A stretch of DNA of 64,000 nucleotides from Haplodiscus bocki (taxonomy: Eukaryota): NCBI GenBank assembly GCA_965655095.1, contig OZ296651.1, positions 117,614,001 through 117,678,000 on the forward strand, in the 5' to 3' direction. Under the pieces are notes generated by a model. The model did not search any database. It was not told the DNA's origin and was given only the letters and a program-made list of their open reading frames with translations. Shown here one piece after another: positions 1 to 64,000 of this stretch. Made by a program: the position numbers and the translations under genes. Within the stretch, counting starts at the first letter, position 1. Each line of letters starts with the position of its first letter.

Positions 1-745
1 TCGAGTTGACGCTAAAGAAATTATGATTTCATATCAACACGCTTTATCCAAAATCTAACTTCGGCAGTAGTTCAGAGGAATAACAGGTAGCCATATTTCA
101 CCCGTCTGCGGATAGTTTTTTTTCGACAATGAGAAGCATTTTTCACATAAAATTCAAAACTTTTTTTGAAAAAGTTCAAAACTCCGATATGTAGGCTTCA
201 GAACCAACCAAAATAATTCTTCCGAAAAACTCAGACAAAACAATTTGTGAAACGCGACAATTTTTGAACGGTCTGTAGAAGAGCAAAATTGTCCAAATCG
301 GACACACTCAAAAACGACATGAAGATTAAAGAAGCATCGTTTTAAAAGTACACGTTACTTCCACAAATTGTTAAAGTTGCTTCCACTAACCACGTTTAAT
401 GTTGACAAAAGCTCGAAATGTAGAGAATCGAAGTACTACTTTCACGACTTCATAAATGAAGGGCACAGATTTATTCGACTATGAGTACTGATTCGCCATC
501 AAGTTGGCCTTCATCATGTCAATATTTACGGTTGACGATTATTTGATGAACACAACTGTCTCAATTCAATGATGATTATGACTAGTAACTATTTCTCATC
601 TTTTTGTTCTCCAGAAGCATCAAACGTTCTATATACGTTTTGGACGACACATGAATGAAATTGTTACATAGAGGATGAAATGTTATGGCGCAGAACTTCT
701 TATTCATAAATTTTTCAAGTACAGAACACCTAACTGTACTTTTTG
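1..745 (+). pseudogene. Decayed C-terminal part of a protein-primed family B DNA polymerase (Polinton/Maverick-like) relic
   Basis: Frameshifted fragments in PolB order: VDAK (motif A-like, ~5), KYYFHDF...STDS (~431-497, YxDTDS-like), TSNY, IEDEM, PKLY-like (~730); paralogous to 16611-17345. Confidence 0.5.
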
Positions 746-1371
746 ATGTTTTGAATAAATCAACTGACGTGAAAGAGCACACAAAACCTATATCGTTCCT
801 CTGAAGCGCGGAGGACGGCAACGAGAACCACCAAAAAATGCTTCAAGTACATGACTCATAGCGCAATCCAAAGATTTGTTTACAAAAACTGGATTGAATA
901 AAAGGAACGGAACTGTACTGAAAACGTTCGATGTTATGGAAGCCGGTAACGGGTAGTTCTGCGGAGTTATATTTTAATTCAGCAGCTCATAAAGTGGAGA
1001 ATTTGTTACTTTACCATTCTGAGCTGGCTTCGGGAAGATATCGTCCGGAAAGTACGTTTGCCATCCTTCATTGCTGCCGTCACGAACTTTAACAAAAAAA
1101 ACAGGGAAATTACTATAGGTTTTGAGGAACATCCCCACTTTTAGTGTGTGAGGCGAACTCTGTACGTATCAGTTGGATCCGCATTGTGCGAGTTAATCTC
1201 GAGCCTGTAGAAAAGTATCGTAAAAAAAGAACAAACAACAGTTTCCAATTATAATAACAGCAATTTAGAATTGCGGAATATTCATCAGAATTGATGCAGA
1301 AAAAAAAGAAAGTTGGATAGAAAAAGCCCCGCTCTCTAGTAATTTCCACCGTTGCCTCCACTGGGTGGTCA
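1..1371 (-). mobile_element. 5' end (partial) of a further A-type Helitron-like unit extending left of the window
   Basis: Collinear, clearly homologous but diverged copy of 16607-17966 (e.g. GTTGACGCTAAAGAAATTATGATTTCATATCAA at 5 and 16611), ending in the same junction motif. Confidence 0.85.
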
Positions 1372-1427
1372 CGCTCTTAAGCCCCACAAAACCGTTTGCG
1401 AGGCGGGGGAGGGGCCCTGTGCCGAGC
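1347..1427. repeat. Unit junction motif J1
   Basis: CACCGTTGCCTCCACTGGGTGGTCA - 26 nt - GCGAGGCGGGGGAGGGGCCC..GCCGAGC; the same motif recurs at 17942, 34981 and 52020. Confidence 0.9.
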
Positions 1428-1940
1428 TTCATAAATCAAGTTTACACCTAACCGGACCCCCCCGAAAAGGAGACGATCTCGAAACCTAACCATACGATTT
1501 CGATCAAACTTTGCATGTGGATAGAGTCTGCCGATGTATGAAGATTTTTGGCACTTACATCATTTTCTTTTTTTTCGTTGGGGAGATATGACGCAATGAT
1601 CCTGTTTTTTGGCAGGTTTCGATGTATTTTTCGCAATATCTCCACACTTTAACCATAGCATTGGACTCAAATTTTTTCTGTGAAGCACAATTGTTGTGGA
1701 CTACCTACACGCCAAAAATTTTCGGCCAGGGCTTTTTGCCCTAGGAGATATGACCTTTCAAAGTTGTCAAAAATAGGCCAAAATCGACCAATTTGTCATT
1801 TCTCCCAAGTTGATGTTAAAAAGTGATGTGAGCCTTCGTCACAACGTGACGGGACTTGTGTCAAATGAAAGATAATTTTCCGACAAAAAAACAGTTTTGG
1901 TCAAATTGCCAAAAATAATGACGGCTATGACGATTTTTTG
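1428..1940. repeat. Conserved non-coding 3' subterminal region with recurring GAGATATGAC / GTCAT-type motifs in both orientations
   Basis: Homologous to ~18024-18560, ~35063-35600 and ~52103-52640 (CCATACGATTTnGnTCAAACTTT, GAGATATGAC, ATGACGGnTATGACG) although unit A is otherwise strongly diverged. Confidence 0.75.
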
Positions 1941-2687
1941 TGGAGGAAAAAAAACAGGTAAAAAGTCAGTTTCTCCTCTACTTCATCTGAAATCCGTCAA
2001 CTTTTTGAAGACGGGAATGAAGCTTTGCTGAAATTTCATACTCAACTATTAGGCTGGGAAACTGTCGGTAACACAAGTTTTAACTTGGGCCAATTCAAGG
2101 AAACTCGCTGCAGTTTTTTTCTTTCAATTCCAAATTATTTGTAATAGAAATTATGAAGATTATGTTATAGTTATACATAACTGTAGCAACTTTTTTTGTC
2201 TCAGCGGACATTGAATTAGATTTGAGGTGACTAGTTACAAGGAGCTGCACAAACTTTTTTCTGAATGACCCATTGAATTTTTAATGAACATTATACGTAC
2301 CAACAACAGAAAACAACTTAAACTGTGCTAAATAAAGTTCACTAGTAATACAAAGTGAAATCTCAGTTTAACTGCAAATGAATGGTAGCAACACTTGAAA
2401 ATTCAATTGAATGCACGTAGAAAAAATGCACTTCATGACAACTCTCTTTTTCTTAAACGACTATTGATCTTTTAATTTTGGGCAAACACCTTACGGTCGA
2501 ATGCCTTGTGACAGTCGATGTTGCATGCAAACAACTTTCGGTAGCTTGCTGAATGATTCACTGCACCTTGTTTTAATTGTCTCTAATACCTGTGTTGAGC
2601 CTGTACTTAATTTGTAACTGTAGTAAAAGCTATCACAACAGTGATTGATATAAGATTTGTTTGAGTTTTGTTGGTTCAATGAAGTGT

Positions 2688-3734
2688 TCATCTCATGTTG
2701 TTTGCATTGTCACTTGCCGGCAAACTTGCGTTAGCGTGAAAAAGGCGTGGTGGCTGGTTTGTATCGTCTCCAGTCCAGGGAATTACATTGTACTTCAAGT
2801 TCACAGGGATCTCAGTCGCTGGAGTGATCCGACAAATTCTTACCCTTTGAACATTTTGGGCAATGTTTTCTTCTGTCAAAGCAGTTTTGTAGAAGCCTGA
2901 CACTCTCCATCCACCATTGTTATTAACATGGTTAGCAACACGCATGACAGCTTCTCTCAAAAGTCCCCTGTCAATTGATGTGTATGCCGATCTAATGATA
3001 GCTTCCTCACAAAAAAGTTTGGTCAAAGACAAACTTTGCAGAATATCCCCTGTTAGAGGATCATCGTCTTGGTTCAATATGTCCTGACTAATTACCCTTG
3101 CTGACATTACCCATGCCGACAAAGTCGATTTTTGCAAACATGCACAAATGCTTTCGTTTTTTCTATTTCTTCTGTCGCACAAAAAACCTGAACAAGTCGG
3201 AAACACAGGAATTGCGTGCAGAAACGAAAGGGGTCGATGTGGGAGACAGAAGTGGAACGTTGCACCCGTCGAGGGATTCAAATCGATAGGAACAGGCTCC
3301 ATTGGCAGGTCGTCGGTAACTACCTCTAACGGAAGAGACACGTTGAAAATTGGATTGGTTCGATCGTTACCAAGGCAGGAGTTGGAAAATATTGCTTCTT
3401 TCACATCAACGATGGCACCAATAGTTAATTTTCGGTCAGCAAAAAGGAGTGAACTTTTCTGCGCAGAATCGGCTATTACTGCAAAGCATTCTCGCGTTTC
3501 CATTTCGCCGATGATGATTAGGCGATCATAGTTTGTGTCAGGGGTCAATCTTTTAGCTTTTACAGTTTGCGGTCGAAATAACTGTAGGGGACGATCAAAT
3601 TTTTTAAAAACCAAAACAACACCTCGGATATATGTGTTCTCACTGTTTCGCAAGAAATTCGAGCAGTTATTTGGGCCGTATTTACACGGGTGGTCATCAT
3701 CTGGAACATTCCCTTCAAGCACCATCTTACACAA
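2688..3734 (-). CDS. Element-borne uncharacterised protein (348 aa), C-x4-C-D-x8-C-x-C motif, possible OB-fold ssDNA-binding protein
   Basis: Open ORF clearly homologous to the 336-aa ORFs of B1, B2 and C (RGVVLV..K.D.PLQLFRPQ, PTCSGFLCDRR...CACLQKS, NGGW.V.GFYK); start uncertain. Confidence 0.8.
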   Translation of the reverse strand: MCKMVLEGNVPDDDHPCKYGPNNCSNFLRNSENTYIRGVVLVFKKFDRPLQLFRPQTVKAKRLTPDTNYDRLIIIGEMETRECFAVIADSAQKSSLLFADRKLTIGAIVDVKEAIFSNSCLGNDRTNPIFNVSLPLEVVTDDLPMEPVPIDLNPSTGATFHFCLPHRPLSFLHAIPVFPTCSGFLCDRRNRKNESICACLQKSTLSAWVMSARVISQDILNQDDDPLTGDILQSLSLTKLFCEEAIIRSAYTSIDRGLLREAVMRVANHVNNNGGWRVSGFYKTALTEENIAQNVQRVRICRITPATEIPVNLKYNVIPWTGDDTNQPPRLFHANASLPASDNANNMR

Positions 3735-5040
3735 CGCGGTTTACACAATGACATTTTTTTAACCTATTCAGGACGCAGAACTAAGTGTTCTCAATAAACA
3801 AAACAAAAAAGATGAAGTTGAACATGATCAAATACAACTTCATTAATTTTCCACGTTTCAGTGAGAATTGTTAGTATACATTAAAAGGTTCGATATTAAA
3901 GTTGTTGCTCTTTTTTTACATTGAAAAAATTTACATGATTATTTACATGATGCCACGCAAAAGGTGGAACTGACTTTTTTCAACTTTTTTTTCACGTTTC
4001 AACGGTCTGAAAGTTCAGTCAATAGTAAATGAGGGGTATGTTTGGTCTTAATTACATTCTTCAACGAACTTTCACTGAACAATCATGGCTGCAAATGCAA
4101 ATGAAAAGAGTATACGTATTGAAAACGTGTTAATTCAGGATAAAATTGAAGTTCTTTGTGGTAACCAGTCTAACATGAAACTAAAATCTTTTGAAAAATG
4201 ATTAATTCATTGCACAGACAATGATAGCAACTTGAAAGAAATGAAACAATCGACAGTTTTTTGACTTAAGCAAATGAAGTTGAATCGAAGCTACATAAAA
4301 CGATATTTCAGGGGAAGTAATCTGCGGAATGTTCCATTTCAATGAGAATTTCAATTAGGTACAAAAAATTAACAGAAATAAAAACAACGCCGAACAAAAA
4401 GCAACATTCAAGGGTTTAGCAGTATCCATGGGTTTAGCAGTATTCACTTTATGGAGAAACGTATGTGAAAGAAACTAGCATACATAAAAAACAACGCAAC
4501 ATACCAAATTCAAAGGTTTACCGGATTAAAATGACATTTACTCAAAAAATCATTGAATTTTGTTGAGAAGCTACAAAAAAATAAAAACTCAGATCACTTT
4601 ACAGTCGATTCCAATTGTATGCACAGTAAAACAACCAATAACTCCTATTTGTTTGCTGCATGATAAAATAGGAATATCTGTTTAATCGAATATGCCGAAG
4701 GAAGCCTTCAAAACCTTGGTCGTCCAGTTTTCCCACAACACTTTTGTTTCTTTTTCAGTTGGAAAATGATGTGATTGCTTTCAGAACCCCAGTCGACATT
4801 GAGCAGGTGTACGTATTCTGCGACGCTCTGTTAAAAGAGTGGGCATTAAACAATTACAATTGATCACAATTTTGTCGACCACATTATGAAAACTTTTCAG
4901 TCAACTTTGATATTTTAAAAGAAACTAAGAAGAAAGAAAACAAACACGCCATTACCAAAAAATCTAACACAGGGTACCATGTTAGAGACTGCGTTCATTA
5001 ATCAACAACTACTTCACGAAAGCTTTGTTACTTGTACTTA

Positions 5041-5807
5041 TCACAGGTCAGAAAAATGTGGTACAGTACCCAAAACTCTTTTTCTTAGAATGTACATCAA
5101 GTTGGAAACACCGTGACGAGATAAATGCACGCCATCCATCAAATTCCTCTCGGAGCTCATTTTGCTAGCCACCGACAAAAAATTGTATTGACCCGAAGAG
5201 TTTCTGAGTCCATCGTTCACCCTTTTGATATCTAGGAGGCAACGTTTGGATCTCATGACAAGAGCCAGACAGTATACTGTGTAACACATTGGAGTGGCCA
5301 GACGCACGAGGTACATAATGTCTCGAACCACCTAAGATTTAACAAAATTTTTTGAGGTGAACATGCACTTCGTTTGATTTTGTCGAACTTTCTTCAAATT
5401 TTGGAGGAAAAAAATGAAAATACTTTCAGTTTCATTTGACGCTCAGCTTTTTGATAGAAAAATTTTTTTCGCAGGGAAATATCACCTGCCTATCAATTCA
5501 TGCACAATGCACCTTGATGTTGCAATGAGTATTTTCCTGAAAATGTTTTCAGTCGCGACCAACCTGACATTCTGTTGAACAAATCACTCACTTGCTCAGG
5601 AGTTTTTCCCCGCTGTCTGCCCCTGCTTGTAAGTGCATTTGCCCCGATGAACAGAATGATTGATTCATAAAACGTTGTTAGGTTTCTTAAACAGTCAATT
5701 ACCGGATGGCAAGATGCCGTGGCACCAGGGAAAAACTTCACTTCCAGGTTTTCGTGCTTCCTGACAAGTCTTCTGCCAAGAGAATCAGCTATGATAAGAT
5801 GTCTCAT
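5041..5807 (-). CDS. SGNH/GDSL hydrolase, two exons (5807-5592 and 5331-5041, 168 aa)
   Basis: SGNH blocks IADSLG, FPGA, FIGAN in exon 1 and DGVHLS in exon 2; phase-0 intron CAA|GTGAGT...TCTTAG|GTG (5591-5332) at the same codon as in B. Confidence 0.85.
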
Positions 5808-6720
5808 TTAGATCTGCAGAACGTTGAAAAACAAAGACAAGGGGGGACGACAAAAAAAACGACAATTAACGATTCCAACATCATAGGTACACTATGATGG
5901 AACACAGAAGATAAGTGTCATTAGCATTAAATTGGAGTATAAAACGCAAGAGCTGAAAATATCATTGTTCCAAAAGCTCTAAATATATATTTGCTCATTT
6001 GAGTGTGTCTGCTTTTTGGTATAGAAGTTTCACTAAGGTTTCACTAAAGGTTTCACCTTGCGGTCGAAACAGGAAGAAGTACAAGGCTTTTATCATACAC
6101 TATCTGGGAGTATATCGTTATTAGGACAAACAAAAAAGAAAGTGTTCGATTAAGCATACGTTAAAAATGCAGTGCAAAAAGTTAAATTTTCTAATCAATC
6201 AATTTTACTAACAGTGGGCAATCAGGAACGTTCTTTGTTAAGGGGCAGTTTAAGAACACCTAATGTACCCATTTCAATGTTCCAAAAAGCATGTTGAAAG
6301 TGCAGCAAACTTTTTTCCGCAAATGAATTTTGTCGAGAAAGTTTTGTATTAAACTTACTTAAACGTTGAACTCTATGGAAAACAGTACGTTGGCTAAATA
6401 CTCTGTAGACTACTCTCAAAGGCGTCAGAAATCGAACAATTGAATTGTTGTAAATAGCAAAAGAAAAAACATTTAGAAATAACAAATTCAGCGTTCTTTA
6501 AACACAGCAAAAAGCAAAAACACACATACTAAAAACATTATACGTGCACCACTGGAAACCACCGGGGACATTGAAGATATACGTTGGACGTTTAAAAATT
6601 CATTTCATGTGTTGAATAAATAATGAACTTCAGGTTTTTTTGTGAGAAAGCATTCATTTCGTCACATTTCACAGTCGGCGAAGCATTTGATAAGTAGTTT
6701 GTCAGTGTTTCTCTAAGGTA

Positions 6721-9700
6721 CTAAAGTAATATGGGCTGATTACAGCAAATTGCCAATTTCAAGACATCTTCTTTATGAGGCCAATTTATGATTAAGTTTT
6801 CTGCTGTTGACAATGCATTCGGGAGGGAGATGTTCTTCTTCCTCAAGTTAAGCACTTTAGTAAGCCACCGTTTTTCAAAAAACCTTATTCTCTCCGTTGA
6901 GCTGCTTGGAAGAAAACCAGTCACGTAAGCACACAAAACCCAAGGTCTTCGAGAGGGATCCTGTGTGAATGATGCTCCCAAGCCAACATTATCTTCACGA
7001 ATTCGTCGATTGAGGCACATTGTTGAACCAATATATAACAAGTTGTTTTGCGGGACGCTCTGAATAAGGTAACAGTAGCCAACATTCTCCTGCGGTATAC
7101 TGATGGTTGATGGAAAAGGGTTTGTAGCACCATGGAAGCTCGTTGGGTCACGGGAAGAACACTTCTGGAGGATTTCGGAAGTCAGCTCCGACCACTGTGA
7201 CTTTTTACACAGCAAACTCAGAATGGCTCCTTCGTTCGACTGCTTCGATCCCACGAAAGTGATGTCCGCCAGTGATCGAACACGACTCATTACTACGTAT
7301 AGTTGCTCTGGCAACCAAAGTGAAAACTCTTGGGCTCCAACAATCTGCGTGGCAACTGTTGGGAGTGTTTCGCCCATAGTTTTATGAATAGTTGACGCCA
7401 CGTACAATTTGAGGGGGAATTGGATTCTGCGACAAATAGTTCTGTGGTTTAGACGAATGTTCACTCCAATTTCTTTTGCAAGGACAATACATCTCCAGGT
7501 ACTTCGAATTACAGAGAGTGGTGGAATGGATCGGCAACCAGCAGGTGCCAAGGCAACAGTTACTGTTCCGTTGTCAGCCAATGAGTCCAGGGAAACCAAA
7601 ACACAGAGTTTTCCTTGGAAAGCCATCACATTTGGCTTGTTAACGGTGAGTCGGAGAATTGCTCCAGGGAACAGAAACAACGATTGTGGCTCCAAACATT
7701 TCTTGTTTAAAAATTTTGTCGCCGCTCCAGAAGCTTCTATCCAGTTATCCGTACTTGACACACACATTTCATCTGTCGATGAACTTTCATGGAACTGGGA
7801 ACCACTGTCTTTCACTTGACAAATTTTCTTTAATGTCGCATATCTTTCTGCTGTGCGAGTAGCAAAAATTCTAATTGTATCATTTGGTACGTCATCCCAA
7901 CATTTTACGAAATTGCAATTTCGCTCAATCAAATTCCAAATTTGCTTTCCGATGGGAGGTGTTCTGGGAAAAGTTGACATGAGTGACAAAACTTTCTGAC
8001 CTGCTTCGTTTTGTATACGCACAAAGTGCTGGAGGAAACTAAAATGAAAAGTCGTTAAAGGGAATGAAGAACTGATCAGGCAACTTCCTTTTGGTGGAGG
8101 AAGTTGAAAAAAATCTCCTGTTGCAATGATTAGTTTCCCAGCAAATGGCACGTAGTTCGAGCAAATGATTTGGAAAACGTGGTCCGTGGCAGCCCAAAGT
8201 TCACTTGAGATCATCGAAATTTCTTCAACGAACAATACATCCAGATTCTGGAGAAACCGACTTTTGTCCGGTGATTTCTGCAAGCTGGACAAAGCTACTC
8301 GAGACAAAGAATTAACAGTTCCATTTTTTTCCACCGGGAAAGGAATGAGAGCGTTCAGATGCTTCCCACCTAAAGTAGCCGACCTTTCGGCCGCCAGCGA
8401 AGTTACCATGCAATTGAGTCCTTGACATATTGCATAACTCAGACCTCTCAGCATGATGAACGTTTTTCCCGTTCCTGGTGCCCCTGCAATGATTTGATGT
8501 CTGACGAAATTTTGTGTTCCTCCTCTGTACAAGTCCACCATTTCAACTAAATGTTTCAAAATTTCACTCTGTTCACAGTACGACTTCACTGTCTGGCCAG
8601 GATGTCTACCAAAGTCCGGTTTCCAAACAACGGGTGCAGTTAGGGAAGAGTCTATCATACTTTCTTCGCTTGGAAGTCCCATTTGACATGTGTGTAAGAA
8701 CTCTACCAATCTAATCTTGTTCATTGTCAAATCTACAGCAACATTTTCTTCGGAGTCGGCAGAGATAGTGCGATCCAAAACAGCTGGTACCCCGGATGCA
8801 AAATACAAATTGTTTTCTAACAGTGCCTCTCCTAGAACACTATTTGCCATCAACAAATACTTGTCAATGAGTTTACAGGATCCTGGCACAAAGCGGAGCT
8901 GTTGCAGTAGGTACCGGCGAGCTAGTTGAAGGACAACTGCTACAGTAATGTTGTTACGCTCGACCAGTTTGGCAGCTACAAAAGCTTCCCTGAAAGAGGA
9001 AACAGAGAGAATGTCCAGTTCGGTGTCAAACGAACCAAAAGTTAGCACAAAGTGCAAGAAGAACTTTGTTGGACTACTGGGCAGATTATTTGTGAAAACC
9101 ACTATGGCTTTTTGATCTGAGAAACAAACATTGTACGCTAGTAGTCTGGGGCAACTGTTGGTTCCTTGCAATTTGGGGACAATGTGTTTGCGGCACTCCT
9201 CTTTCAAAAATTCGTCCCTCGGATTATCACTTCTTGTTGCACAGAAATCAAGAAAATCAAAGATAGCGGGTGGGCGTATCTTGATGACGTATCCGAGGCA
9301 ATCAACCCAAAAGTCATTACACGATGCACGGCTCAACAAAATCTCATGACTACTTTTCCCTTTCGAAATGTTGTTTTTGAGTCTAACGAAGCAACTGAAA
9401 TAACTTTTCAAACTGCTCACAAAGAGAAGCTCCGGTGGTCTCAACCCAAAAATGGTCACTTTGTCAGGCGTAATCGAACTCGCTTCTACATCTGCCAACA
9501 ACAATTCTTGATTTTTTGTTAATTGTCGATGTTTTGGAAGCTTCAGGACGTTTTTCCGAATTCGAACAGCTCCGGCAAAAACAGCACTGAAGTTCATGGT
9601 GCTCGCAGTATATTTTTCTATCACTATTCCTGATCTGAATTCTTTGGGAACTGTTGGTACATGAATGAAATCTACGTTTGTGCAAACGTACGGCAACTGC

Positions 9701-14490: not shown

Positions 14491-14661
14491 AAGTTTATCA
14501 ATAACTCATCTTTAATAGTGAATACAATGTAAAGAGTAGGCGCCATTATATAACCAACGTACAAAATGACATCGTTTTGCTCGGCTTTCAAACTGTTCAA
14601 TTAACGGTAGCATCTAATTAATTCGAAAAAAGTAGTATCCAGAAAAAAATATGCAATGTGG

Positions 14662-14699
14662 GCCTTGGGTTTGCGCAGTTAACGGAGCAAAACCAAGGC
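14662..14699. promoter_or_regulatory. Conserved inverted repeat (13-bp arms, 12-nt spacer) upstream of polyprotein
   Basis: GCCTTGGGTTTGC-GCAGTTAACGGA-GCAAAACCAAGGC; equivalents in all four units; function inferred. Confidence 0.75.
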
Positions 14700-51900: not shown

Positions 51901-52019
51901 CTGCTTCACGGCTTCACGTTGACTGACGCACAATGACAGGACTACGCCCGTTTGTCGCAGAAAATAAATCTGAACACGAAAGAAACACCGATTCAAACCT
52001 CACGCCTTCTGGTAATTTT

Positions 52020-52102
52020 CACCGTCGCCTCCACTGGGTGGTCAGGGGTTTTTGCCCCATATCAGGCCTTTGCGAGGCGGGGGAGGGGCCCCTTTGCCGA
52101 GC
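52020..52102. repeat. Unit junction motif J4 (B2/C)
   Basis: CACCGTCGCCTCCACTGGGTGGTCA - 27 nt - GCGAGGCGGGGGAGGGGCCCCTTTGCCGAGC. Confidence 0.9.
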
Positions 52103-54678: not shown

Positions 54679-55527
54679 AGTCTGAAATCAAAAGTGGTTG
54701 AAGCTGCCTGAGAACTGAACAATTGGAGTATTCAAAACCATGCTTTTTACTTTTTTTAAAGATTCTGTGAACGCAATTTCCGTTAAGGTTCCTTACAGTC
54801 AACAGGCAAGTATTTTCGGTTTCAAGCAATTAATACAATGAAATAGCGCTACTGCTTCAAGTAAAGCAACCTGTTTTTCAAAAAAAAGCATGACAATTCA
54901 TCAATTATTCAGAGTTCTCAAGACTTCTTCATCATTAAGTTCAATTATAAAAATGTCATGTTACAATTACAGTCATCTTACGGTTCAACGCATCACGCTT
55001 TGTCGATCAGTAACATTTAAGGCCATAGAAAAAAAGGTGAGCAATGCATTCGAATACACCGTTATTAAATCGGTTTTTTCCGTCCACAGAACTTGTAGAA
55101 AGTTAAGGTTAATAAAATATATTTTCATTGCAGATGTTCCACAACTGAAGTTTAATACGTACTCAAAGCTACACAAAGCAAGAAAATTCAACTAATCAAA
55201 AATGCTGAACTAACTACAGGAACAAAAATTCTAAACTGTTCATCTGGTGCATATTATCGAGGGCACAGAAGGGGCAATACCAGCTGACATTTCAAAATGC
55301 GACAATCTACAGCCGTAGCAGTCAGTCGAGCCGAAAATTTTTCGTCAGTAGTCCTATGCTGAAATTCGCAACACTGTGCAGTCGATGCAAATATATTCAA
55401 AAGATTGGAAGAGAACTCTGTCAACGCTTCACTATGCAGTCGAAGCAGTTGGGATCCAACGCGTACGCAGAAACATTGTGCATAACAGAAAATGGTTTCA
55501 ACAGTTTTGTCAGAATGGATATTGCGA

Positions 55528-58500
55528 TCACCATGGCTTTAAACAGGCAGTGGGTTCACCACTACATACAATAAGTTTCAAACCGTCTTCTTTGTGCGGC
55601 CAAGTTTTTGCGATGTCTTCACCTAAATTGATGGCTGTGAAGAGTGATACATTTTTCTTTTTGAGATTAACGTAGTTCGATGCTGCATCCAGCCATTCTT
55701 TCTCAAATACGCGGACTCTATGAGACGCATTGGTTAAATTGAACCCAGTTACATAGGCACAAACTTTCCAGGGCAACCGATTTGTAATTTTTGTGAACTT
55801 AGAACCTAACCCAGAATTGTGTTCCCTCAGACGACGCACCAAGGACATAGTGGAGCCAATGTACAACAGCTGACTTTGTGGGACACTCTGCAGCAAGTAA
55901 CAGAAACCCAAGTTTTGGGTAGGTAGGTCACGAGTTGATGGCGGAAAAGGCGATGCTTTGGCATGATAAACTGTGGGATCGCGCGCAGAACTTTTTGTCA
56001 GAATTTCATTAGTCAGCTCAGCCCACTGTGATTTTTTGCGGACTAAGTCTAAAACTGCTCTTCTATTCTCCTCCTTCGTGCCCACAAAAGTGACATGGTT
56101 CAAACTCCGTACCCTGCTCATAACCACATACAACTGCTCAGGAAGCCACAAAGCAAAATCTCGTGACCCCACTATTTGCGTCGCCACCATCGGCAGAGTT
56201 TCGCCCATGGTCTTGTGAATGGTGGACGCAACAAAAAGCTTTAACGGATACTGTATCCTCCTGCACACTGTTTTATGGTTTAATCGGAAGGCTACACCAG
56301 TTTCCTTGCCAATAACAACACACCTCCAATTGTTTCTGATCACAGAGAGTGGCGGGATATTTCTGCAACCAGCTGGAGCAAGAGCAACTGTTAGGGTACC
56401 ATTTTCAATGGTATCCAAAGTCAGGAGGACGCAAAGTTGACCTTGATATGCTGATAAGGATGGTTTGTTGACAGTTAATCGCATAATAGCACCGGGGTAT
56501 AGAAAAAGTGATTGGGGCTCAAGGCACTTTTTGTTCAGGAACTTCGACGCTGTTGCAGACGCCTCACTCCAGTTGTCGGTGCTCGAAACGCACATTTCGT
56601 CGATGGACGCACTTTCAAAGTATTGTGCTCTGCTGCATTTAACTTCAGTGATTTTATTCTCGGTTGCTTTCCGTTCCGCTTGTCTAGTAGCAAAAATTCG
56701 AATTCTATCGTTCGGCACGTCGTTCCACGATTGTACAAAAGTGCAATCTTTCTCCATAATTTTCCAAATTTTTTCTGCATTGGCATCTGTTTTAGGCGTT
56801 GGTGATAACAATGATAACAGTTCCTGGCCGTTCTTGTTCCGCATTCGGACAAAATTTTTCAAATTGTGGAAAGCAAAGGTTGTTAAAGGAAAAGAGGAAC
56901 TCATCAAGTAAGATCCAGAGGGCGGAGGAAGTTGAAAGAAGTCACCAGTTGCGACAACGAGTTTTCCGCCGAAAGGAACATAATTTGCTGTGACAACTTG
57001 CAAAACATGATCTGTCGCTGCCCAAAGCTCGCTAGATATCATCGAAAGTTCTTCAACGAAAATTACGTCTAAGTGCTGTAAAACTCGGCTTTTGATAGGA
57101 GATCGTTGTAAATTGGACAGAGCCTTCTTCGAAAGTGATTCTGCAGAGCAACATTTTTCAACTGGAAATGGTATCAAAGCATTCAGATGTTTTCCAGCTA
57201 AAGCAGCAGATCTTTCAGCTGCTATGGATGTCACCACACAATGCAATCCTTGACATAAGGCGTAAGCAAGAGATTTCAGCATCACAAAAGTTTTGCCGCT
57301 TCCTGGTGGACCGAAAACAATCTGATGTCTTATGAAAGTGCAATGTCCTCGTTTATACATGTCTATTGAATTAATGAGTTCGTCCAAAACTTGACGTTGC
57401 TCTAAATATGAGTTTTTACTTTGATCCGGGCTCTTCTGTAAAAGTGGCTTCCAAGGCACTGGAGTATTGAAAGTGGCGTCGATCATCGTTTGCTCTGCAG
57501 GTAATTCAGTCTGACATGTCTGAAGGAAAGCTATCATTTTACACTTTTCCATAGCCAGTTGAATTGTGACTGTTTCTTCGCATTCCTCCAGGACGCTTTT
57601 GTCGAGAACAGGTGGTAAAGCAGCAGCAAAAAAGAGATTGTTTATCAACAGTGCCTCCGATATGACACTATGGGCCATTACCAAGTAAGTGTCAATCAAT
57701 TTAGATGACCCTGGAGTGAAGCGAAGCTGTTCGAGCAAATACTTCTTAGCTATTTCTTTCACTTCGCCATCAGTGACGGTTGAGTTTAGCAAAATACCCG
57801 CTTTTATGAAAGCTTCTTTGAAAGTTTGGACGTTCAAGATGTCCAACTCAGTGTCAAGTTTCCCGACGGTCAGTAACAGATGAAGTAAAAACTTTGTTGG
57901 GTTATTCGGTAGACTGTTGCTGAAAACAACAACGGCCTCTTCTTCTGACAAGTTTTTCCAATGAGCAACGAACTGAGAACTGTTCTTGTTTTCAAGAATG
58001 GGAACAATGTGTTTCCTCATTTCGCGTTTCAAGATCTGATTCCGTTCTTCACCAAACTTTTCTTGACAGAGACTTACGAAAGAGTTAACAGCAGATGGGC
58101 GCAGTTTAACCAAATATCCAAGTGCATCAACCCAGCAGCTTTTACGTAAACCTTTTTTCAAGAACTTCTCGTGATTGCTAAGGCAGTTTGTTCTTCTGGG
58201 TTTCCAGCGCACAAACCAGCTGTAATAGTCTTTTAACTGCGATACGAACAAAAGTTCCGGCGGCCTCAGTCCAAAAACAGTTACCTTGTCAGGAGAAATG
58301 AAATTGTTTTCAACATCTGCAAGGAGGAGGGTTTGACTTTTTGTAAATTGTCGAAGTTTTGGGAGTTCCAATAATTCTTTTCGCACACGGATTCCATCAG
58401 TGAAAGTGGCGCTGAAATTCGGAGACTTGTGAAAACGTTTCTCAATTACAATTCCTGAACGATATTCTTTGGGAACTGTAGGCACATGTACAAAGTCAAC

Positions 58501-61500
58501 ATTTGTGCAGACGTAAGGAAGTTGTAAGCACCACCAAAGACATTCAGTAATACTGACAATGCGACCTTTTACTGATTGTCGTTTCTCTTCCTGACGCAAA
58601 TTTTTCAAACAAGCTCGAACACCTGCTATCTTCTCATGTTCTATCGGTTCTGTCAGAACCTTTACACTGTTCTCTGTCTGACCTGCAACAATTGTGGCTG
58701 CTGCTCGAGATTCAATGCCCGCTGCATACTTCGCAACGTAACGGGGTGCCATGTAATCGTCGTAAATTTGAACGTTAGTGCTTGATTGAGTCAGTGCAAA
58801 CAAAGCTGCATTGGTTGGCGAGAAATGCTCGTTAGACACAGTCGGATAGTGATGCTTCCCGGCAATTAGAGGGTCTTTGACCTTCGGCAACAACGTGTTA
58901 ACGTCAATGTCTGCTAAGTCCATGGCTTGTAACAAGTCCATTGTTTCAGAAGAGAAGTTAATGGGAACTTCTTTGAACGAAAATGCATTCGATGGTGGAT
59001 ATCTTGGCACACGACAAATTGGCTGATTGAGACGATCTGTTTTTTTATGGCATCGCTGACGCCCTTTGGTACAGTTATGAATTTGATACTTTTGAAATAA
59101 CTCACCGAGATGCAACCTTTCGTCTTTCGTTAATTGAGGGCAACTGCTTTCTAATGCACCCAAAAATGTTTCTTTTGAACAGCAAACTCGAGATCTCACC
59201 TCAATAGAAAACTTGTCTTCTGGAGTACAAAGTATCACATGCAAATGAGGGAACCCAGCTGTCTCCTCCTGCCATTCATACCGCATCCAAATGTGGGATA
59301 CCGGTCCCAGTGGTCTTTCTGGAGACTTTTTCACCCACTCCATTACGTATTGTGAAGCTCTATACCAACACCTGAGCATCGGCATCAATTCTGCTTGAAT
59401 GGCCGCAGAGAGCAGTTCTTTTTTTGTAGTTTCTGGTGGGTACATTTCATAGAGTGCCTGAAAAATTTTTCTAACGCCAGGATGGGTCGACTGGCTGCAA
59501 GTATATGTCAAAAAGTACGTTGGATTTTTATCTCGAATTAAAGCTGCGAGTTCACAGACATTTTTACGACTTTCCGCACAGTCAAACTTGAATGTTTGCG
59601 TTGAAACAAATGAACAATTTGTAGGGCCGGAACTCACTTCCTGCCATCCCCGATTTAAAACCAATCTAACATCAGTTTTGTGAAGCTGCATGTTCAAAAG
59701 GCTGTCAAACACATACTGCAAATAAGTTGGATTGCATGATGTCAACAGCGAACCATCTTTGATTCTCGTACGAAGCATGTCTTCCAAACCAGCAAAACCC
59801 AGTTGTCTGTTGTACTTGGAGTTGTTGTAAAGCGCGGCTGGTATTGATCCATGAAAACTACCGTTGTTAGCTTGACACCAGAAAATTGATGGAAACAAAA
59901 GAGCTTCTGGTTGAATTAGAGGCAGCGCTGTCGTGGAAGTTGCTGCAATGTTTTCTAAAAAACGTTTTTCTTTCAGCGACAAACTGATTGGACTCCCTTT
60001 ATGCCGGTACAAAAGGTTGCATTGAGAATTGAGCAGAATGTGAAGTGGCAGTTTGAAAAGGTCTTCATTTCGATGTGGATCAATGAAAAGAGCTTTTTTA
60101 TCAGGGCAAGTTTGGAGACTAGCCAATACATTTATGCTTTCTTCAAGAGGTTCATGGTTGTCAACTTCCAAAGAAAAATCCCCAACAACAGACAAATTGT
60201 TGTTGGACACCATACCAAAGGCAATTGCTGCTGCATCAGGCTCGCTTGATTCGATAGACTCTACAATAGATGATGTTTCGGATACAACTCGCAAGCTAGA
60301 CGACTCTGAATTAACAGGAGAGAAATGCGTATTTGCCCTCTTTTCCGACATCGGCATTGGATCAACAAGAACACGTCTATTCGGATACTGTAGACCTTCG
60401 TTGAAGTGACGCTTGCATACGCAACTGTTACATTGGGAATAAGGGCAACGCAAAAAAGAAGCACGGGTGCATCTACAACGAAAACTGCTCTTTCTGAAGT
60501 CTCTTGTCAAAGGAACGTCATGAGATTCACAGATGAAGACGCCCTGACCAGTCAAAGTGCTCAGCAAGTTCCATTTCAAATCAACTAATTCAAGATTTCT
60601 TGATTTCTCATAAATTGCTATTGTCCAATATCCACGAAGACCTGAACTCAAAGCCTCAGTTCTAGACTCTGTCATCTTCTTAGCGTATCTGCAGTTTTTC
60701 TCCAAAAGCCAGAACTTCTGGAAGTCACCTCCATGTCGAACCATCAACCTTGGCTCGGCGGCCGGGCCTCCATCCTTTGCTCCGACTGCAATCAGTTCAT
60801 AGCCGATATCGCTGATAACCAACTTTAGCGGAGGTTCGCTTTTGCTCCGCAAATTATTGGGGGAGTTGGTGGTGAATATAGCGTGAGTTGTTTGAACGGG
60901 AAGTTGCAGATTTGTATAACAAGTTATATTTTTTCGATTCGTTAAGGGGATGTGGCAAAAATTCTCTGACACGGTTGCCAAAAACTGTGCGGCGAGATGG
61001 CAACAACAGTACTTCACACCTTCTAACTGCTCTTCAGTTCGGTTTTTCTCTAGCAAAGTGTTTATTGCTTCTTCCGAGCGCCGTAGAAGTAGCGTATTGC
61101 TGGCTTTCTTCATTGCCTTTGAGGTAATAAAAACATTCCTCAGCGAAGATATCAAAGGCCTCAAGGTCACAGAATACTTACCTGATGTTACTAAAGAACG
61201 ACACATCAACGGTGACAGACACAGTGCAGCTTGTACCAGCCAAAAAACATTGCTGCCTTTACAATTCAGAGGAGGGGGCGAACAACCATACTCGCCGGTT
61301 CCGTGGGCGAAGGAATAACAACTCAAAGCTTCCACGTTGTTTAAATAGTCTTTATCATTTTTATCTAGAACTTTAGCTATTTCTACACAAGTCTCCAAAT
61401 CTGTAGAAAGGGCAGGCAACAAACATTCTGATATGTTTTCAATCTGTGCAGGATAGTCAAGAATCCCCAAAGCTACATCTTCAACGATTTTACCTTCTTT

Positions 61501-63597
61501 CACCCATTCACAAATCTTCGTTTTAACATCTTCCCGAAAACGGCACGCGAGGCCTTCAGCGTGGTACAAGATATCGCTGGTGATGTCCCAACGCGTTCTC
61601 CGCCGCAACTGAACTGTACTCATTCCACTATAAGAACCAACACTTTTCAATAACTGGTAGGTATGACTGGCGAAATTTGCTTTAATATTTGTTATCCACG
61701 AAATTGTTGGTGCCACCATACTCAAACGCTCATCGTGAATTAACGCAGTTCTTGACAGGACAGGATGTGATGGAGGATGAAGGTATTGCACAGACGACCC
61801 CTTTGAGTGCATAAGGCAAGCGTGAACAACCAATCCTTCTACTTTGTCTACACGCACAGTTGTTGCAATTAAAAACTTCCGCAACGATGACGTTGGAACC
61901 AAGAAATCTGACCTAATTCCTCTAAGATGCAAATGACTAGAAGCTCCAAAAGACGTAAAAGCTGGGTCGAATAGATTCAAAAAGTGTTTAGCATTGATTA
62001 AACCGGATTCTTCAATGAAACACCAGCAACCAAATGGGCACCGAACGTTCGGGTAAGGTTCTTTATCCAAAGCTACTGCTATTTGTTCTTGTTGAAGAGT
62101 TTTGATCAGTTTCTGGAAATAATGCAAACGAGCGGTTCCGTCAACGACACATTTCCCATTGATTTCTTTTCCATTGAGAAACTGTTGGACACATGGAGTA
62201 AACTTTTCCAAGCATCCCATCCATTGCTGTCTCAGTTCCCAAGATAACAACGTTAAAACATTCAACTGCTGCTCCTTGGGCATTTTTTCATCACTCAAAA
62301 GCGTGAAAAAAACAGATGGCCATGCGTGACTCCACTCGATGCGTTCGGAAGTACAGTAAAGTAGACATTGATTGCATAATATGGGAAAAGCGTCCTTGAT
62401 TCGGTTACCAAACATTCTGTTTATAAAATCTGACTTTTCTGTCTTAGTAAGCTTTAACGGATATTGCAGCGTGGATTGTCGCAAGCATTTGCCGCAAAAC
62501 TCTCCGTCAGCAGACTTAGAATTACCATCTGTCGTTTGTTCATTTGTTGCATCACTGTGTGAAACCGTAGCAGTGTTAGTGTACAGATCCTCGATTTTGG
62601 GTATTTCTCTGCTCAGAACAGATTTGGTAGCGTTTTCTGACAACGGTAGCATCGGAAAATTTTGATCTGACTTTGCGTTACAGGAGTTCTGACTTGGAAT
62701 GTGTGTGACGTGAGTTTCAAGGCATGTCTTCGAGGTGGATGGATCCGCAGTGTGTTTTGCTTTTTTCGCTGGTGGGACCCCTGTTGTGTTTTCCGGGTAC
62801 CTGAAAGATTCAATATCCTCTCCCAAAACTGACGAAGAGAAATGCATTGCGTTGGAACCAAGACAGGAAATTCTTTGTGAACCTGCAGCGTTTTCTTCAT
62901 TTGCGACTGAAACCAACTCACTGATTACTTCAAAGTGATTTGCATTCCAGGTTTGCTGAATGAAAATTCCACGACGATTCGTGCTCAGAGAGCATTCATA
63001 AACCAACCAGGATTTCAGAGGAACATGATATAAATATACGTCCATTTGGAAAATCTGACAAAACGCGTATATTTCAACGCATGTTCCGAAGACTCCATTT
63101 TCTTCCATTTTCGACAAACTGAGGTACTCTTGAATCGAAGTACAAAGCAAAACACGGTATTGGTTTGGAAAATCAGCGGAGTAAATTGTGGTTTGTAAGC
63201 TGTTTGGAGGGAAGTTGATGAACATCATGTTGCTAACAATTATATTCCGTAGAATTGAACTACAATCCTGTGACAAACCGAGAGCAACTGCTAAGGATGA
63301 GAAAAGGCAATTACCATCGCCAAAAATCGCAGTTACACGCGCCGGACGCAAATTATAAATGATACTGTCATTTGCGATCGAAACGTCTAGAGAGACTAAA
63401 AAATCAGTTAGACCTAAAGTTGAGAGACAGTTCAGAGTTTCACTTCGTGCAACTGGTGAAACGGAGATTGAAATGTCGGGAATTTTGTATAAGATGCCCA
63501 GCGGCTCATCAGATTGCAGTTCTCGATCAATGTCCTTCAGGCAAACATGGCTTGCAACAGCAAATTGTCCACAAGAAGTACAACGGCGACGCTTCAT
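55528..63597 (-). CDS. Intact 2689-aa RepHel-like polyprotein: C2HC knuckle, OTU-like cysteine protease, Cys-rich region, HUH Rep, PIF1/SF1B helicase, SLX1-type GIY-YIG endonuclease
   Basis: CTSCGQF..H.C; GDGNCLFSSL...FGTCVEI...HFE (OTU); YFLTYTC, RYEWQ..GFPHLHVIL, YVAKY (HUH motifs 1-3); GPPGSGKT, VEELSM, GDFFQLPP, YPLKL..ASTIHKTMGETL, QLYVVMSRV (helicase); GFCYLL..LYIGST..RRLREHN.G..RLPW..YV.GF..FEKEW (GIY-YIG). Confidence 0.93.
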   Translation of the reverse strand: MKRRRCTSCGQFAVASHVCLKDIDRELQSDEPLGILYKIPDISISVSPVARSETLNCLSTLGLTDFLVSLDVSIANDSIIYNLRPARVTAIFGDGNCLFSSLAVALGLSQDCSSILRNIIVSNMMFINFPPNSLQTTIYSADFPNQYRVLLCTSIQEYLSLSKMEENGVFGTCVEIYAFCQIFQMDVYLYHVPLKSWLVYECSLSTNRRGIFIQQTWNANHFEVISELVSVANEENAAGSQRISCLGSNAMHFSSSVLGEDIESFRYPENTTGVPPAKKAKHTADPSTSKTCLETHVTHIPSQNSCNAKSDQNFPMLPLSENATKSVLSREIPKIEDLYTNTATVSHSDATNEQTTDGNSKSADGEFCGKCLRQSTLQYPLKLTKTEKSDFINRMFGNRIKDAFPILCNQCLLYCTSERIEWSHAWPSVFFTLLSDEKMPKEQQLNVLTLLSWELRQQWMGCLEKFTPCVQQFLNGKEINGKCVVDGTARLHYFQKLIKTLQQEQIAVALDKEPYPNVRCPFGCWCFIEESGLINAKHFLNLFDPAFTSFGASSHLHLRGIRSDFLVPTSSLRKFLIATTVRVDKVEGLVVHACLMHSKGSSVQYLHPPSHPVLSRTALIHDERLSMVAPTISWITNIKANFASHTYQLLKSVGSYSGMSTVQLRRRTRWDITSDILYHAEGLACRFREDVKTKICEWVKEGKIVEDVALGILDYPAQIENISECLLPALSTDLETCVEIAKVLDKNDKDYLNNVEALSCYSFAHGTGEYGCSPPPLNCKGSNVFWLVQAALCLSPLMCRSLVTSGKYSVTLRPLISSLRNVFITSKAMKKASNTLLLRRSEEAINTLLEKNRTEEQLEGVKYCCCHLAAQFLATVSENFCHIPLTNRKNITCYTNLQLPVQTTHAIFTTNSPNNLRSKSEPPLKLVISDIGYELIAVGAKDGGPAAEPRLMVRHGGDFQKFWLLEKNCRYAKKMTESRTEALSSGLRGYWTIAIYEKSRNLELVDLKWNLLSTLTGQGVFICESHDVPLTRDFRKSSFRCRCTRASFLRCPYSQCNSCVCKRHFNEGLQYPNRRVLVDPMPMSEKRANTHFSPVNSESSSLRVVSETSSIVESIESSEPDAAAIAFGMVSNNNLSVVGDFSLEVDNHEPLEESINVLASLQTCPDKKALFIDPHRNEDLFKLPLHILLNSQCNLLYRHKGSPISLSLKEKRFLENIAATSTTALPLIQPEALLFPSIFWCQANNGSFHGSIPAALYNNSKYNRQLGFAGLEDMLRTRIKDGSLLTSCNPTYLQYVFDSLLNMQLHKTDVRLVLNRGWQEVSSGPTNCSFVSTQTFKFDCAESRKNVCELAALIRDKNPTYFLTYTCSQSTHPGVRKIFQALYEMYPPETTKKELLSAAIQAELMPMLRCWYRASQYVMEWVKKSPERPLGPVSHIWMRYEWQEETAGFPHLHVILCTPEDKFSIEVRSRVCCSKETFLGALESSCPQLTKDERLHLGELFQKYQIHNCTKGRQRCHKKTDRLNQPICRVPRYPPSNAFSFKEVPINFSSETMDLLQAMDLADIDVNTLLPKVKDPLIAGKHHYPTVSNEHFSPTNAALFALTQSSTNVQIYDDYMAPRYVAKYAAGIESRAAATIVAGQTENSVKVLTEPIEHEKIAGVRACLKNLRQEEKRQSVKGRIVSITECLWWCLQLPYVCTNVDFVHVPTVPKEYRSGIVIEKRFHKSPNFSATFTDGIRVRKELLELPKLRQFTKSQTLLLADVENNFISPDKVTVFGLRPPELLFVSQLKDYYSWFVRWKPRRTNCLSNHEKFLKKGLRKSCWVDALGYLVKLRPSAVNSFVSLCQEKFGEERNQILKREMRKHIVPILENKNSSQFVAHWKNLSEEEAVVVFSNSLPNNPTKFLLHLLLTVGKLDTELDILNVQTFKEAFIKAGILLNSTVTDGEVKEIAKKYLLEQLRFTPGSSKLIDTYLVMAHSVISEALLINNLFFAAALPPVLDKSVLEECEETVTIQLAMEKCKMIAFLQTCQTELPAEQTMIDATFNTPVPWKPLLQKSPDQSKNSYLEQRQVLDELINSIDMYKRGHCTFIRHQIVFGPPGSGKTFVMLKSLAYALCQGLHCVVTSIAAERSAALAGKHLNALIPFPVEKCCSAESLSKKALSNLQRSPIKSRVLQHLDVIFVEELSMISSELWAATDHVLQVVTANYVPFGGKLVVATGDFFQLPPPSGSYLMSSSFPLTTFAFHNLKNFVRMRNKNGQELLSLLSPTPKTDANAEKIWKIMEKDCTFVQSWNDVPNDRIRIFATRQAERKATENKITEVKCSRAQYFESASIDEMCVSSTDNWSEASATASKFLNKKCLEPQSLFLYPGAIMRLTVNKPSLSAYQGQLCVLLTLDTIENGTLTVALAPAGCRNIPPLSVIRNNWRCVVIGKETGVAFRLNHKTVCRRIQYPLKLFVASTIHKTMGETLPMVATQIVGSRDFALWLPEQLYVVMSRVRSLNHVTFVGTKEENRRAVLDLVRKKSQWAELTNEILTKSSARDPTVYHAKASPFPPSTRDLPTQNLGFCYLLQSVPQSQLLYIGSTMSLVRRLREHNSGLGSKFTKITNRLPWKVCAYVTGFNLTNASHRVRVFEKEWLDAASNYVNLKKKNVSLFTAINLGEDIAKTWPHKEDGLKLIVCSGEPTACLKPW

Positions 63598-63882
63598 GTT
63601 TTGCTTTTTGGTTGCAGGTTTGATTGCACAAAAAAGGGAAGCAGCATGTCAAAATTTACCATACCTATTTGAAACACAAAAAAAATTACAGACCCCAGAT
63701 AATTGAAGCCGCCAAGGACCCATTTGCGACAAATAGAGCTCCAGAGGCTGCTATAAATTCGACATACAGACTGTGATATTTATTCCTTTCCGCATTTCAA
63801 ACCTTTTTGAAGTTTTTAGGAAAGGACTGTTTCCATAACGGTTACAGTTTCCATTGCGAATTGAATAATGAAAAACAGAAGC

Positions 63883-63920
63883 GCCTTGGTTTTGCGAAGG
63901 CCTCTGAGCGAAACCAAGGC
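63883..63920. promoter_or_regulatory. Conserved inverted repeat upstream of polyprotein (C)
   Basis: GCCTTGGTTTTGC-GAAGGCCTCTGA-GCGAAACCAAGGC (one mismatch). Confidence 0.75.
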
Positions 63921-64000
63921 TTTGGGAAGATGCCTTTTACATATAGTGCTTCACTCGTGCCGACATCAAATAGCAAAAGTCCTACAGGCAAAGCACATAG

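Follow-up and report, generated by a model that had tools for sequence, protein, structure and literature searches.

We analyzed a 64,000-nucleotide stretch of the Haplodiscus bocki genome (contig OZ296651.1, positions 117,614,001 to 117,678,000), which we call the window and which contains no Ns. The window holds a chain of Helitron-like transposable elements whose Rep-helicase (RepHel) protein carries a GIY-YIG nuclease domain. Judged by its junctions, this family seems to insert into, or to recombine at, its own ends.

Units and genes in the window

Every open reading frame (ORF) of at least 200 amino acids (aa) in the window lies on the minus strand, and the elements therefore read from high coordinates to low. 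Read in that direction, the head-to-tail chain is C > B2 > B1 > A > A'. It also follows that C is represented by its 3' 12 kb only, and A' by its 5' part only. The two motifs by which the array had been recognized, CCTCCACTGGGTGGTCA and GCGAGGCGGGGGAGGGGCCC, each have exactly four exact matches, all on the plus strand, where shuffled sequences gave an expectation of 0.01 and 0.00 matches. They are found at 1355, 17950, 34989 and 52028 (CCTCCACTGGGTGGTCA) and at 1398, 17993, 35032 and 52072 (GCGAGGCGGGGGAGGGGCCC), which gives a spacing of 16,595, 17,039 and 17,039 bp.

Unit C (52037-64000, minus strand as are all units) is represented by its 3' 11,964 bp, with an intact RepHel ORF and an ORF2. 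About 2.8 kb of its 5' end lies past the window edge; a related C copy (L069), 99.7% identical to this one, reaches about 2.8 kb further 5'. The two B units are both 17,039 bp long. In B2 (34998-52036) ORF2 is at 36602-37612 and the RepHel is in a single frame with one in-frame stop (ORFs 40387-47508 and 47623-48456). In B1 (17959-34997) ORF2 is at 19563-20573 and the RepHel is broken by one stop and two frameshifts (ORFs 26483-31417, 24422-26407 and 23347-24453). Unit A (1364-17958, 16,595 bp) belongs to an old lineage; its ORF2 is at 2688-3734, and its RepHel has decayed, with frameshifts, into pieces at 12787-14490, 11834-12598 and 6721-10653. The last unit, A' (1-1363), is present only as its 5'-terminal 1.36 kb, which matches the 5' region of A with 86% identity.

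B1 and B2 are 99.35% identical, with about 110 mismatches over the 17,039 bp of each (a first-pass figure of 98.55% included an extra 1 kb of B2-to-C overlap). The large ORFs of B and C are 72% identical, and A can be aligned with B or C in coding DNA only, at about 65%. Apart from the junction motif, non-coding DNA is unalignable between lineages. The window contains three clearly diverged lineages, A, B and C. The preliminary description had reported five units in the same orientation from at least three diverged subfamilies, and the motif positions, the minus-strand ORFs and the between-unit identities of 65-86% agree with it. Rfam and tRNA scans of the window gave no matches.

A full unit encodes one large protein (OTU, HUH Rep, PIF1 helicase and SLX1-like GIY-YIG nuclease) and a 336-aa protein, ORF2. 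The large protein is intact in unit C (55528-63597, minus strand, 2,689 aa), where it consists of an OTU domain, a zinc-finger-like N-terminal region, HUH Rep, PIF1 and GIY-YIG. The OTU-like cysteine protease domain (63025-63321, minus strand, aa 93-191) matches Pfam PF02338 with E 2.8e-5, and the family profile matches OTUD3 in PDB (4bou). The HUH Rep endonuclease domain (58708-59559, minus strand, aa ~1347-1630) is covered by Pfam Helitron_like_N at aa 1347-1456, with a score in the unit C ORF of 27.6 bits, slightly below the cut-off of 28.9; PF14214 is annotated (precomputed) in relatives of the unit C protein. For the PIF1-family helicase domain (56098-57402, minus strand, aa ~2066-2500) Pfam PIF1 matches aa 2066-2225 with E 1.9e-12, and the PDB matches are PIF1 helicases with E 1e-13 to 1e-19. 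The helicase part of Helraiser (7lcc) is a weaker match of the family profile (E 3.6e-8). The GIY-YIG nuclease domain is C-terminal (55684-55908, minus strand, aa 2564-2638; PF01541, E 6.9e-9), and its nearest solved structures are of the SLX1/URI type (SLX1 4xlg, E 3e-13 with the family profile). In an alignment of 12 homologues with 31-68% identity, H1451-I-H1453 of the HUH motif, Y1620-x3-Y1624 (YxxxY), Walker A at 2096-2102 and the GIY-YIG residues are all invariant.

We also looked at the region between the OTU and the Rep (59578-63000, minus strand, aa ~200-1340 of the unit C ORF). These more than 1,000 residues match no Pfam family and are conserved between lineages, with invariant Cys/His clusters such as C368/C371/C408/C411 and C1041/C1043/C1051/C1056/C1061.

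ORF2 (53668-54678, minus strand, in unit C) is present in every full unit and is under purifying selection (dN/dS of 0.2-0.37 between close copies). It has an invariant Cys cluster, C169-x4-C174-x10-C185-x-C187. We found no named homologue, no Pfam match at E up to 10 and no PDB match with a 13-sequence profile, and its AlphaFold (AF2) model has a pLDDT of 35, which is too low for fold comparison. The strand pattern and the Cys cluster lead us to guess that it might be an RPA-like single-strand-binding protein.

The junction between units

All units meet at an invariant 17-mer, TGACCACC/CAGTGGAGG, where the slash marks the break. The 17-mer is the core of a conserved junction of about 90 bp, in which the 3' end of one unit is joined to the 5' end of the next. 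In element orientation we read a GC-rich block (...GGGGCCCCTCCCCCGCCTCGC), about 27 nt with a small hairpin, TGACCACCCAGTGGAGG and then CGACGGTGAAAATTACCAG... The 3' side of the junction thus has the GC-rich block, which is palindromic, the small hairpin and TGACCACC, and the 5' side begins YAGTGGAGGCGACGG...

There are four such junctions in the window, all on the minus strand. C>B2 (52028-52091) has its core at 52028-52044, the break at 52036/52037, the 3' hairpin, and the GC-rich 20-mer at 52072-52091. B2>B1 (34989-35051) has its core at 34989-35005 and its 20-mer at 35032-35051, B1>A (17950-18012) at 17950-17966 and 17993-18012, and A>A' (1355-1417) at 1355-1371 and 1398-1417. A junction of the same type as B1>A is also found in a contig from JGI (L010). 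As had been described, the units are joined at one conserved motif with no host DNA and no target-site duplication (TSD), and none of the four has duplicated or inserted bases.

In sequence, the 27-nt segment belongs to the lineage of the unit upstream, no matter which unit comes next, and the part past the 17-mer belongs to that of the downstream unit, no matter which unit preceded it. The switch from one lineage to the next falls inside the invariant 17-mer. Among near-identical B copies the ninth core base depends on what follows: it is C before a unit that begins ...AGTGGAGG, and T before units of other kinds (TAGCGCTGG..., TAGAC... or TAGAAG...). The correspondence between the base after TGACCACC (C or T) and the kind of unit downstream holds even for B copies separated by 1-3 differences in 10 kb. 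Since the ninth base varies with the downstream partner, the break lies after TGACCACC. The termini then read ...TGACCACC/YAGTGGAGG..., and CTAG arises only where the downstream partner gives T.

The hairpin has a GC stem of 3-4 bp and a loop of 4-7 nt, and in most of 31 distinct ends it finishes 0-1 nt before (T)GACCACC. Its stems are compensatory at a fixed position (GGGG/CCCC, GGGT/ACCC, TCTC/GAGA and GCT/AGC). The 5' TGGAGGCG is partly complementary to the subterminal 3' CGCCTCGC, with no sequence variation in either, and palindromic blocks are present. On the strand opposite the genes (plus strand, 1355-1417 and the other three junctions) there are at least four G-runs (GGG, GGGG, GGGGG, GGGG) within about 65 nt, which could in principle form a G-quadruplex.

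Relatives, their neighbors and their age

Protein searches with RepHel-GIY-YIG and ORF2 found homologues in ENA metagenome assemblies only (L001 and L066-L077 are ENA contigs). These are long-read contigs of up to 1.5 Mb with about 50-130x coverage, and some carry eukaryotic host-gene fragments (CAP-Gly, SSNA1). A scan of JGI metagenomes for the 17-mer gave 58 loci. Two of them, L010 and L045, are genuine family members on short-read contigs from the Cyphastrea sp. 2 coral metagenome (Ga0126343), and we rejected the rest as chance matches in GC-rich bacterial DNA. Going by the identity of the samples, and not by the window, these related loci probably come from a stony coral, likely a merulinid. 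The same scan of a viral collection gave no matches. For the relatives we drew on a few assemblies and took 10 kb on each flank of a called gene, so what follows is a sample and not a genome-wide census.

The same lineages recur in other loci at 92-99.7% identity, with different neighbors and in a different order. L001 is a B unit (95.7%) with a junction at both ends, and upstream of it is an A-like unit, a junction type missing from the window. L010 is B>A and L067 is B>B. L066 is C>A: it matches the left half of the window's C>B2 and the right half of B1>A, with the crossover inside the invariant core. Compared with C>B2>B1>A in the window, L066 looks like a candidate empty site next to a filled one. 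Over all loci the junction types are C>B, C>A, B>B, B>A, B>C, A>A', A-like>B, and B joined to short units of various kinds.

One ORF2 protein is encoded identically on 12 contigs of one long-read assembly, and we fetched ten of these loci. Over 10 kb the ten B copies share 99.25-99.99% identity (L074 and L076 are one base apart), and they have at least eight different downstream neighbors, all joined at TGACCACC/YAG. The full-length neighbors are a B variant, a C that is 99.7% identical to the window's, an A variant, and a B that is 99.6% identical to the window's B2. The short ones are a run of eight units of about 1.05 kb, tandem units of about 1.43 kb and TAGCGCTGG-type units, and a further neighbor is an unclassified 6-kb stretch followed by short units.

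A tabulation of neighbors had been proposed in the preliminary description. In our limited sample, about 40 junctions from the window and 20 related loci, every junction is at the core and head-to-tail, and none adjoins unique host DNA. Within that sample the family is site-specific, or niche-targeting. We saw no solitary copies among the sampled loci. Four candidates for array ends or solitary copies (L002, L064, L072 and L075) were rejected because their 3' flanks are more short-unit arrays or unclassifiable.

The lineages that meet at these junctions are very old. Between the RepHel of C and B, dS is about 2.0 (saturated), dN is 0.22 and dN/dS is 0.11, and pairs that are more distant are fully saturated. 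These values mean that each lineage has been under protein-level selection for a long time, and for A, B and C the saturation excludes a duplication whose copies diverged where they lie. The 17-mer and the 20-mer are invariant although synonymous sites are saturated.

There are also traces of recombination. Unit C is a mosaic, in which ORF2 and the 3' 3.1 kb (52037-55180, compared with 34998-38113 in B2) are B-like, with a dS of 0.10 and 89-92% nucleotide identity. Because this module is B-like and the RepHel is anciently diverged, the C lineage is a recombinant. Between B1 and B2, 24 of the roughly 110 differences are in the last ~540 bp (17959-18500 and 34998-35540), and most of the remainder is 99.5% identical, which suggests that the 3' tip of one B unit was replaced through recombination or conversion. 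L079 has two units of about 21 kb with three units of about 1.04 kb between them. Its RepHel ends are 78% identical and its 3' modules 90%, the same module pattern as C and B.

Short units are common around the full-length ones. L002, L003 and L004 have ORF-less units bounded by the motif. Runs of ORF-less units of about 1.05-1.45 kb sit beside full-length units at L074:12640-20060, L075:12650-21011, L004:1560-5910 and L079:6695-9593. They are of several types, each delimited by the junction motif, intact or degenerate, and they look like satellite DNA built from non-autonomous elements.

Some of the related loci have features of their own. L065 (31% aa identity) has tandem repeats of about 1.3-1.4 kb on both sides (1-8164 and 19308-26188). 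These repeats share a 55-bp segment (821-930) with two perfect palindromes, GCCCAC..GTGGGC and GGGCATGCC..GGCATGCCC, and this segment may be the junction of that lineage. In L063 (18496-19101) and L064 (18126-18626), tandem repeats of about 50 bp start directly after the RepHel stop codon. The L064-type 3' region (25407-26920) recurs upstream of the L063 unit (390-1918), where the similarity breaks off abruptly past …CCAAGTTGGCCTT; the L064-type lineage may have its 3' terminus there, and the locus may be another heterologous adjacency. In L068 (ENA ERZ26859043, ctg68648, a 30,691-bp contig that the assembler marked as circular) a deletion of about 32 bp has removed the entire core from the junction at 12600-12680, and the join reads …GGGGCGCGA/GAAAATTAC…. 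With the core deleted between them, two full-length units are fused into one double unit. The self-closure of L068 could be a tandem repeat of the double unit or a real circle.

Origin of the arrays and known elements

The self-targeting reading is supported by the junctions and their neighbors. The explanation that we prefer, with modest confidence, is that these are autonomous Helitron-like elements of 15-17 kb that live in arrays of their own kind, and that Rep-nicked junction circles re-insert at resident junctions. As part of that explanation, the normal habitat of the family would be a head-to-tail array of kin, made of full-length units of several ancient lineages and many non-autonomous units of about 1-1.4 kb.

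The junction would then be a single nick site that serves as both origin and terminator. Rep would nick at TGACCACC/YAG, the helicase would peel off one unit, and the ends would join into a circle bearing the same junction. By the reverse reaction the circle would re-insert at the identical site of any resident junction of any lineage, which is possible because all lineages keep the same core. The outcome would be a precise, scar-free insertion in the same orientation between two resident units. Read-through or local duplication would yield adjacent near-identical units such as B1 and B2, and the SLX1-like GIY-YIG may nick the other strand or resolve a branched intermediate. If Rep recognizes a long site that spans the nick, each resident junction would be a donor site as well as the best acceptor. 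A site of this kind would account for scar-free joins in one orientation, mixed arrays, an invariant core, short units and the absence of host-flanked copies. The nick position, the circle and the inserting enzyme are the parts of this mechanism that we infer. There is a precedent in Helraiser, whose transposase makes and precisely re-cleaves RTS-LTS junctions, with double-stranded DNA circles bearing an RTS-LTS junction as integration donors (PMC5876387). The array junction is the sequence expected where the ends of a Helitron circle join.

A stronger proposal, which we hold tentatively and on balance slightly doubt, is that for the RepHel-GIY-YIG clade, large and scarcely described so far, its own origin/terminator nick site is the only integration site, so that the arrays are self-made landing pads. 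To call the arrays a safe harbor is a reading of the pattern and not a result.

Several points weigh against the self-targeting explanation. The case for nicking at the core, for circles and for new insertions comes from sequence. The sample is biased, coming from two or three assemblies and probably one host group, and no array end was seen among the sampled loci. The folding energy of the whole junction is no better than that of shuffles (z from -1.2 to +0.5). We did not find the canonical core with profile and fuzzy searches in lineages below about 45% protein identity (L063-L065 and L079), and one distant GIY-YIG RepHel locus (L078) showed no tandem structure within its short contig. Finally, the mosaics indicate that ordinary recombination is active in the arrays, and this alone could reshuffle neighbors.

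Taken further, that last point becomes an explanation in its own right, one that we take seriously while thinking it unlikely. Conventional transposition would lie in the past, Rep would have no target preference for the core, and the arrays would come from host recombination or gene conversion at the ~90-bp motif and the 3' modules, plus concatemers, with exchange between arrays and/or circles. It draws on the mosaic in C (ORF2/3' module dS of 0.10, RepHel dS of ~2), the same pattern in L079, and the last ~540 bp of B1 and B2, which differ five- to ten-fold more than elsewhere. The core-deleted junction of L068 indicates that a non-Rep rearrangement does occur there, and tandem Helitron arrays elsewhere are usually ascribed to rolling-circle concatemers (PMC5876387, PMC5148889). 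What makes it hard to accept is that the crossover would have to fall repeatedly within about 17-45 bp of identity, always in register, and give ten near-identical B copies at least eight different neighbors. An invariant motif amid saturated synonymous sites points to a sequence-specific function, and the absence of host-flanked copies would still need explaining. It is also possible, although we consider it quite improbable, that the arrays are driven by the nuclease in the manner of a homing endonuclease and not by HUH strand transfer. GIY-YIG would cut at or near a resident core, and repair would copy in a unit from another junction, with the conserved 3'-end and 5'-end motifs flanking the break as the sole homology. 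The catalytic residues of GIY-YIG are conserved in every lineage, and the domain is on 118 of the 148 best cluster representatives; the junction is conserved on both sides of the break, as homology-dependent repair needs, and the products are precise and scar-free. However, the nearest solved relatives (SLX1/URI-type) are structure-specific nucleases and not sequence-specific homing enzymes, the homology arms would be very short, and a fully conserved HUH/YxxxY Rep and helicase would be left without an obvious role. Recombination and homing likewise make the core the place of exchange, as the preliminary description had proposed when it argued that mixed arrays need insertion into, or recombination at, the end motif. 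That argument is supported by the lineage switch inside the 17-mer, the combinatorial junctions, the ten B copies, the saturated dS, and about 40 junctions of which none borders on unique host sequence.

We think it very improbable that one ancestral unit was duplicated long ago, segmentally or in tandem, and that the copies diverged in place. The units are collinear, in the same orientation and of similar size, and for the B1/B2 pair alone (both 17,039 bp and 99.35% identical) a local duplication is possible. For A, B and C it is contradicted by the RepHel dS of ~2 with dN/dS of 0.11, which implies long protein-level selection in each lineage, by non-coding DNA that is unalignable except for the junction motif, and by the occurrence of the same lineages at 92-99.7% elsewhere with other neighbors and order. 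This duplication was one of the outcomes that the preliminary description had named as counting against it. To an assembly artefact, in which repeat copies were mis-joined or a unit falsely repeated, we give almost no credence. Long repeats do assemble poorly, one related contig is flagged circular and several end inside units. On the other hand, heterologous junctions of the same type are present in independent short-read (L010, L045) and long-read assemblies, the ~110 differences between B1 and B2 are spread over the unit, and four different units are involved.

By its proteins and ends the family belongs to the Helitron superfamily: it has an HUH/YxxxY Rep with a fused C-terminal PIF1, a 3' hairpin, no terminal inverted repeats (TIRs) of the cut-and-paste type, and no TSD. 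We compared it with the Helitron-like groups HLE1 and HLE2 by domain and terminal features. It is not a canonical Helitron (HLE1), as it lacks 5'-TC...CTRR-3' termini and we saw no A/T host target. It is not a strict Helentron either, as the C-terminal nuclease is GIY-YIG (PF01541) and Pfam finds no AP endonuclease (Exo_endo_phos, PF03372) in the unit C ORF; a Helentron-like protein from carp that does carry PF03372 matches only remotely (E 3.5e-9, 25% identity). Penelope-like elements were rejected because no ORF has a reverse transcriptase domain and the GIY-YIG is fused to RepHel.

Among known systems the family resembles Helentron/Helitron2 (HLE2), with which it shares a single large RepHel protein, an upstream OTU, an added C-terminal endonuclease, short non-autonomous derivatives rich in tandem repeats, hairpin ends and the lack of a TSD (PMC11417382, PMC3627910, PMC4067079). 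It differs in that an SLX1-like GIY-YIG replaces the defining AP endonuclease, in that no T-T host target was seen, in that every end adjoins a family member at TGACCACC/YAG, and in its units of 15-21 kb with a private ORF2. The sole published Helitron-like family that we found with a GIY-YIG beside RepHel is HelenSM92 (HLE2, Sphagnum magellanicum, HELIANO paper), a plant family with a captured GIY-YIG domain and ordinary TT/TT insertion sites (PMC11417382). Unlike HelenSM92, which we compared by description only, the fusion here is ancient, widespread and in arrays. In clusters at 50% identity, the 118 GIY-YIG carriers counted above are among the 148 best representatives, and the GIY-YIG RepHel clade is ancient and large.

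The preliminary description started from the premise that Helitrons insert dispersedly and that rolling-circle over-replication gives concatemers of identical copies. This premise understates the literature, in which tandem arrays and head-to-tail junctions have been published for maize centromeres, Myotis, the Drosophila pseudoobscura Y and Metarhizium (PMC5876387, PMC5148889, bioRxiv 10.1101/2021.06.02.446622). Those arrays are also head-to-tail with precise junctions of 3' end to 5' end, ascribed to rolling-circle replication or to insertion at one end of a copy already in place. They consist of the copies of one family, often truncated, with many dispersed solitary insertions, whereas here neighbors have saturated synonymous divergence, near-identical copies have varied neighbors and no solitary copy was seen. 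The telomere-capping Helitrons of Paramecium (PMC13085455) are likewise strict in site and orientation; their large ORFs evolve under purifying selection, and ORF-less derivatives are abundant and accompanied by satellites. Their target is the telomeric repeat at chromosome ends, and the apparent target here is the family's own junction. In contrast to a position at chromosome ends, contigs with family junctions are long and also hold host genes.

Prokaryotic HUH elements of the IS91/ISCR and IS200/IS605 types nick a short specific sequence beside a hairpin, have a target related to their own end (tetranucleotide targets) and yield tandem multimers by one-ended transposition. They have no fused helicase or nuclease, and they do not usually occur as arrays of diverged lineages. 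The window family shares the hairpin-adjacent site and the tandem units with them and differs by its fused helicase and nuclease and its mixed arrays. Tandem Helitrons, site-specific Paramecium Helitrons and one GIY-YIG HLE2 family are thus already known; what appears to be new is the combination of an ancient, large GIY-YIG RepHel clade with mixed-lineage arrays at a conserved core.

Of the steps of eukaryotic rolling-circle transposition, integration is the one least understood. A long, fixed and recognizable target would make it directly testable with oligonucleotides and plasmid targets, and the transposase gene is apparently intact in unit C and in relatives. The GIY-YIG in place of the Helentron AP endonuclease would meet the same mechanistic need by an independent route, and the fusion seems far commoner in sequence data than the literature suggests. 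If the self-targeting explanation is true, a new copy of whichever lineage would enter without a scar between two resident units, and the arrays would accumulate satellite-like DNA along the way. Transposons would thereby have a concrete path to satellite DNA, in which short non-autonomous units multiply and serve as landing pads. The coexistence of very old lineages in a single genome, at little cost to the genes of the host, would also be explained. The family would then be a Helitron counterpart of the retrotransposons that target rDNA or telomeres, with its own members as the niche.

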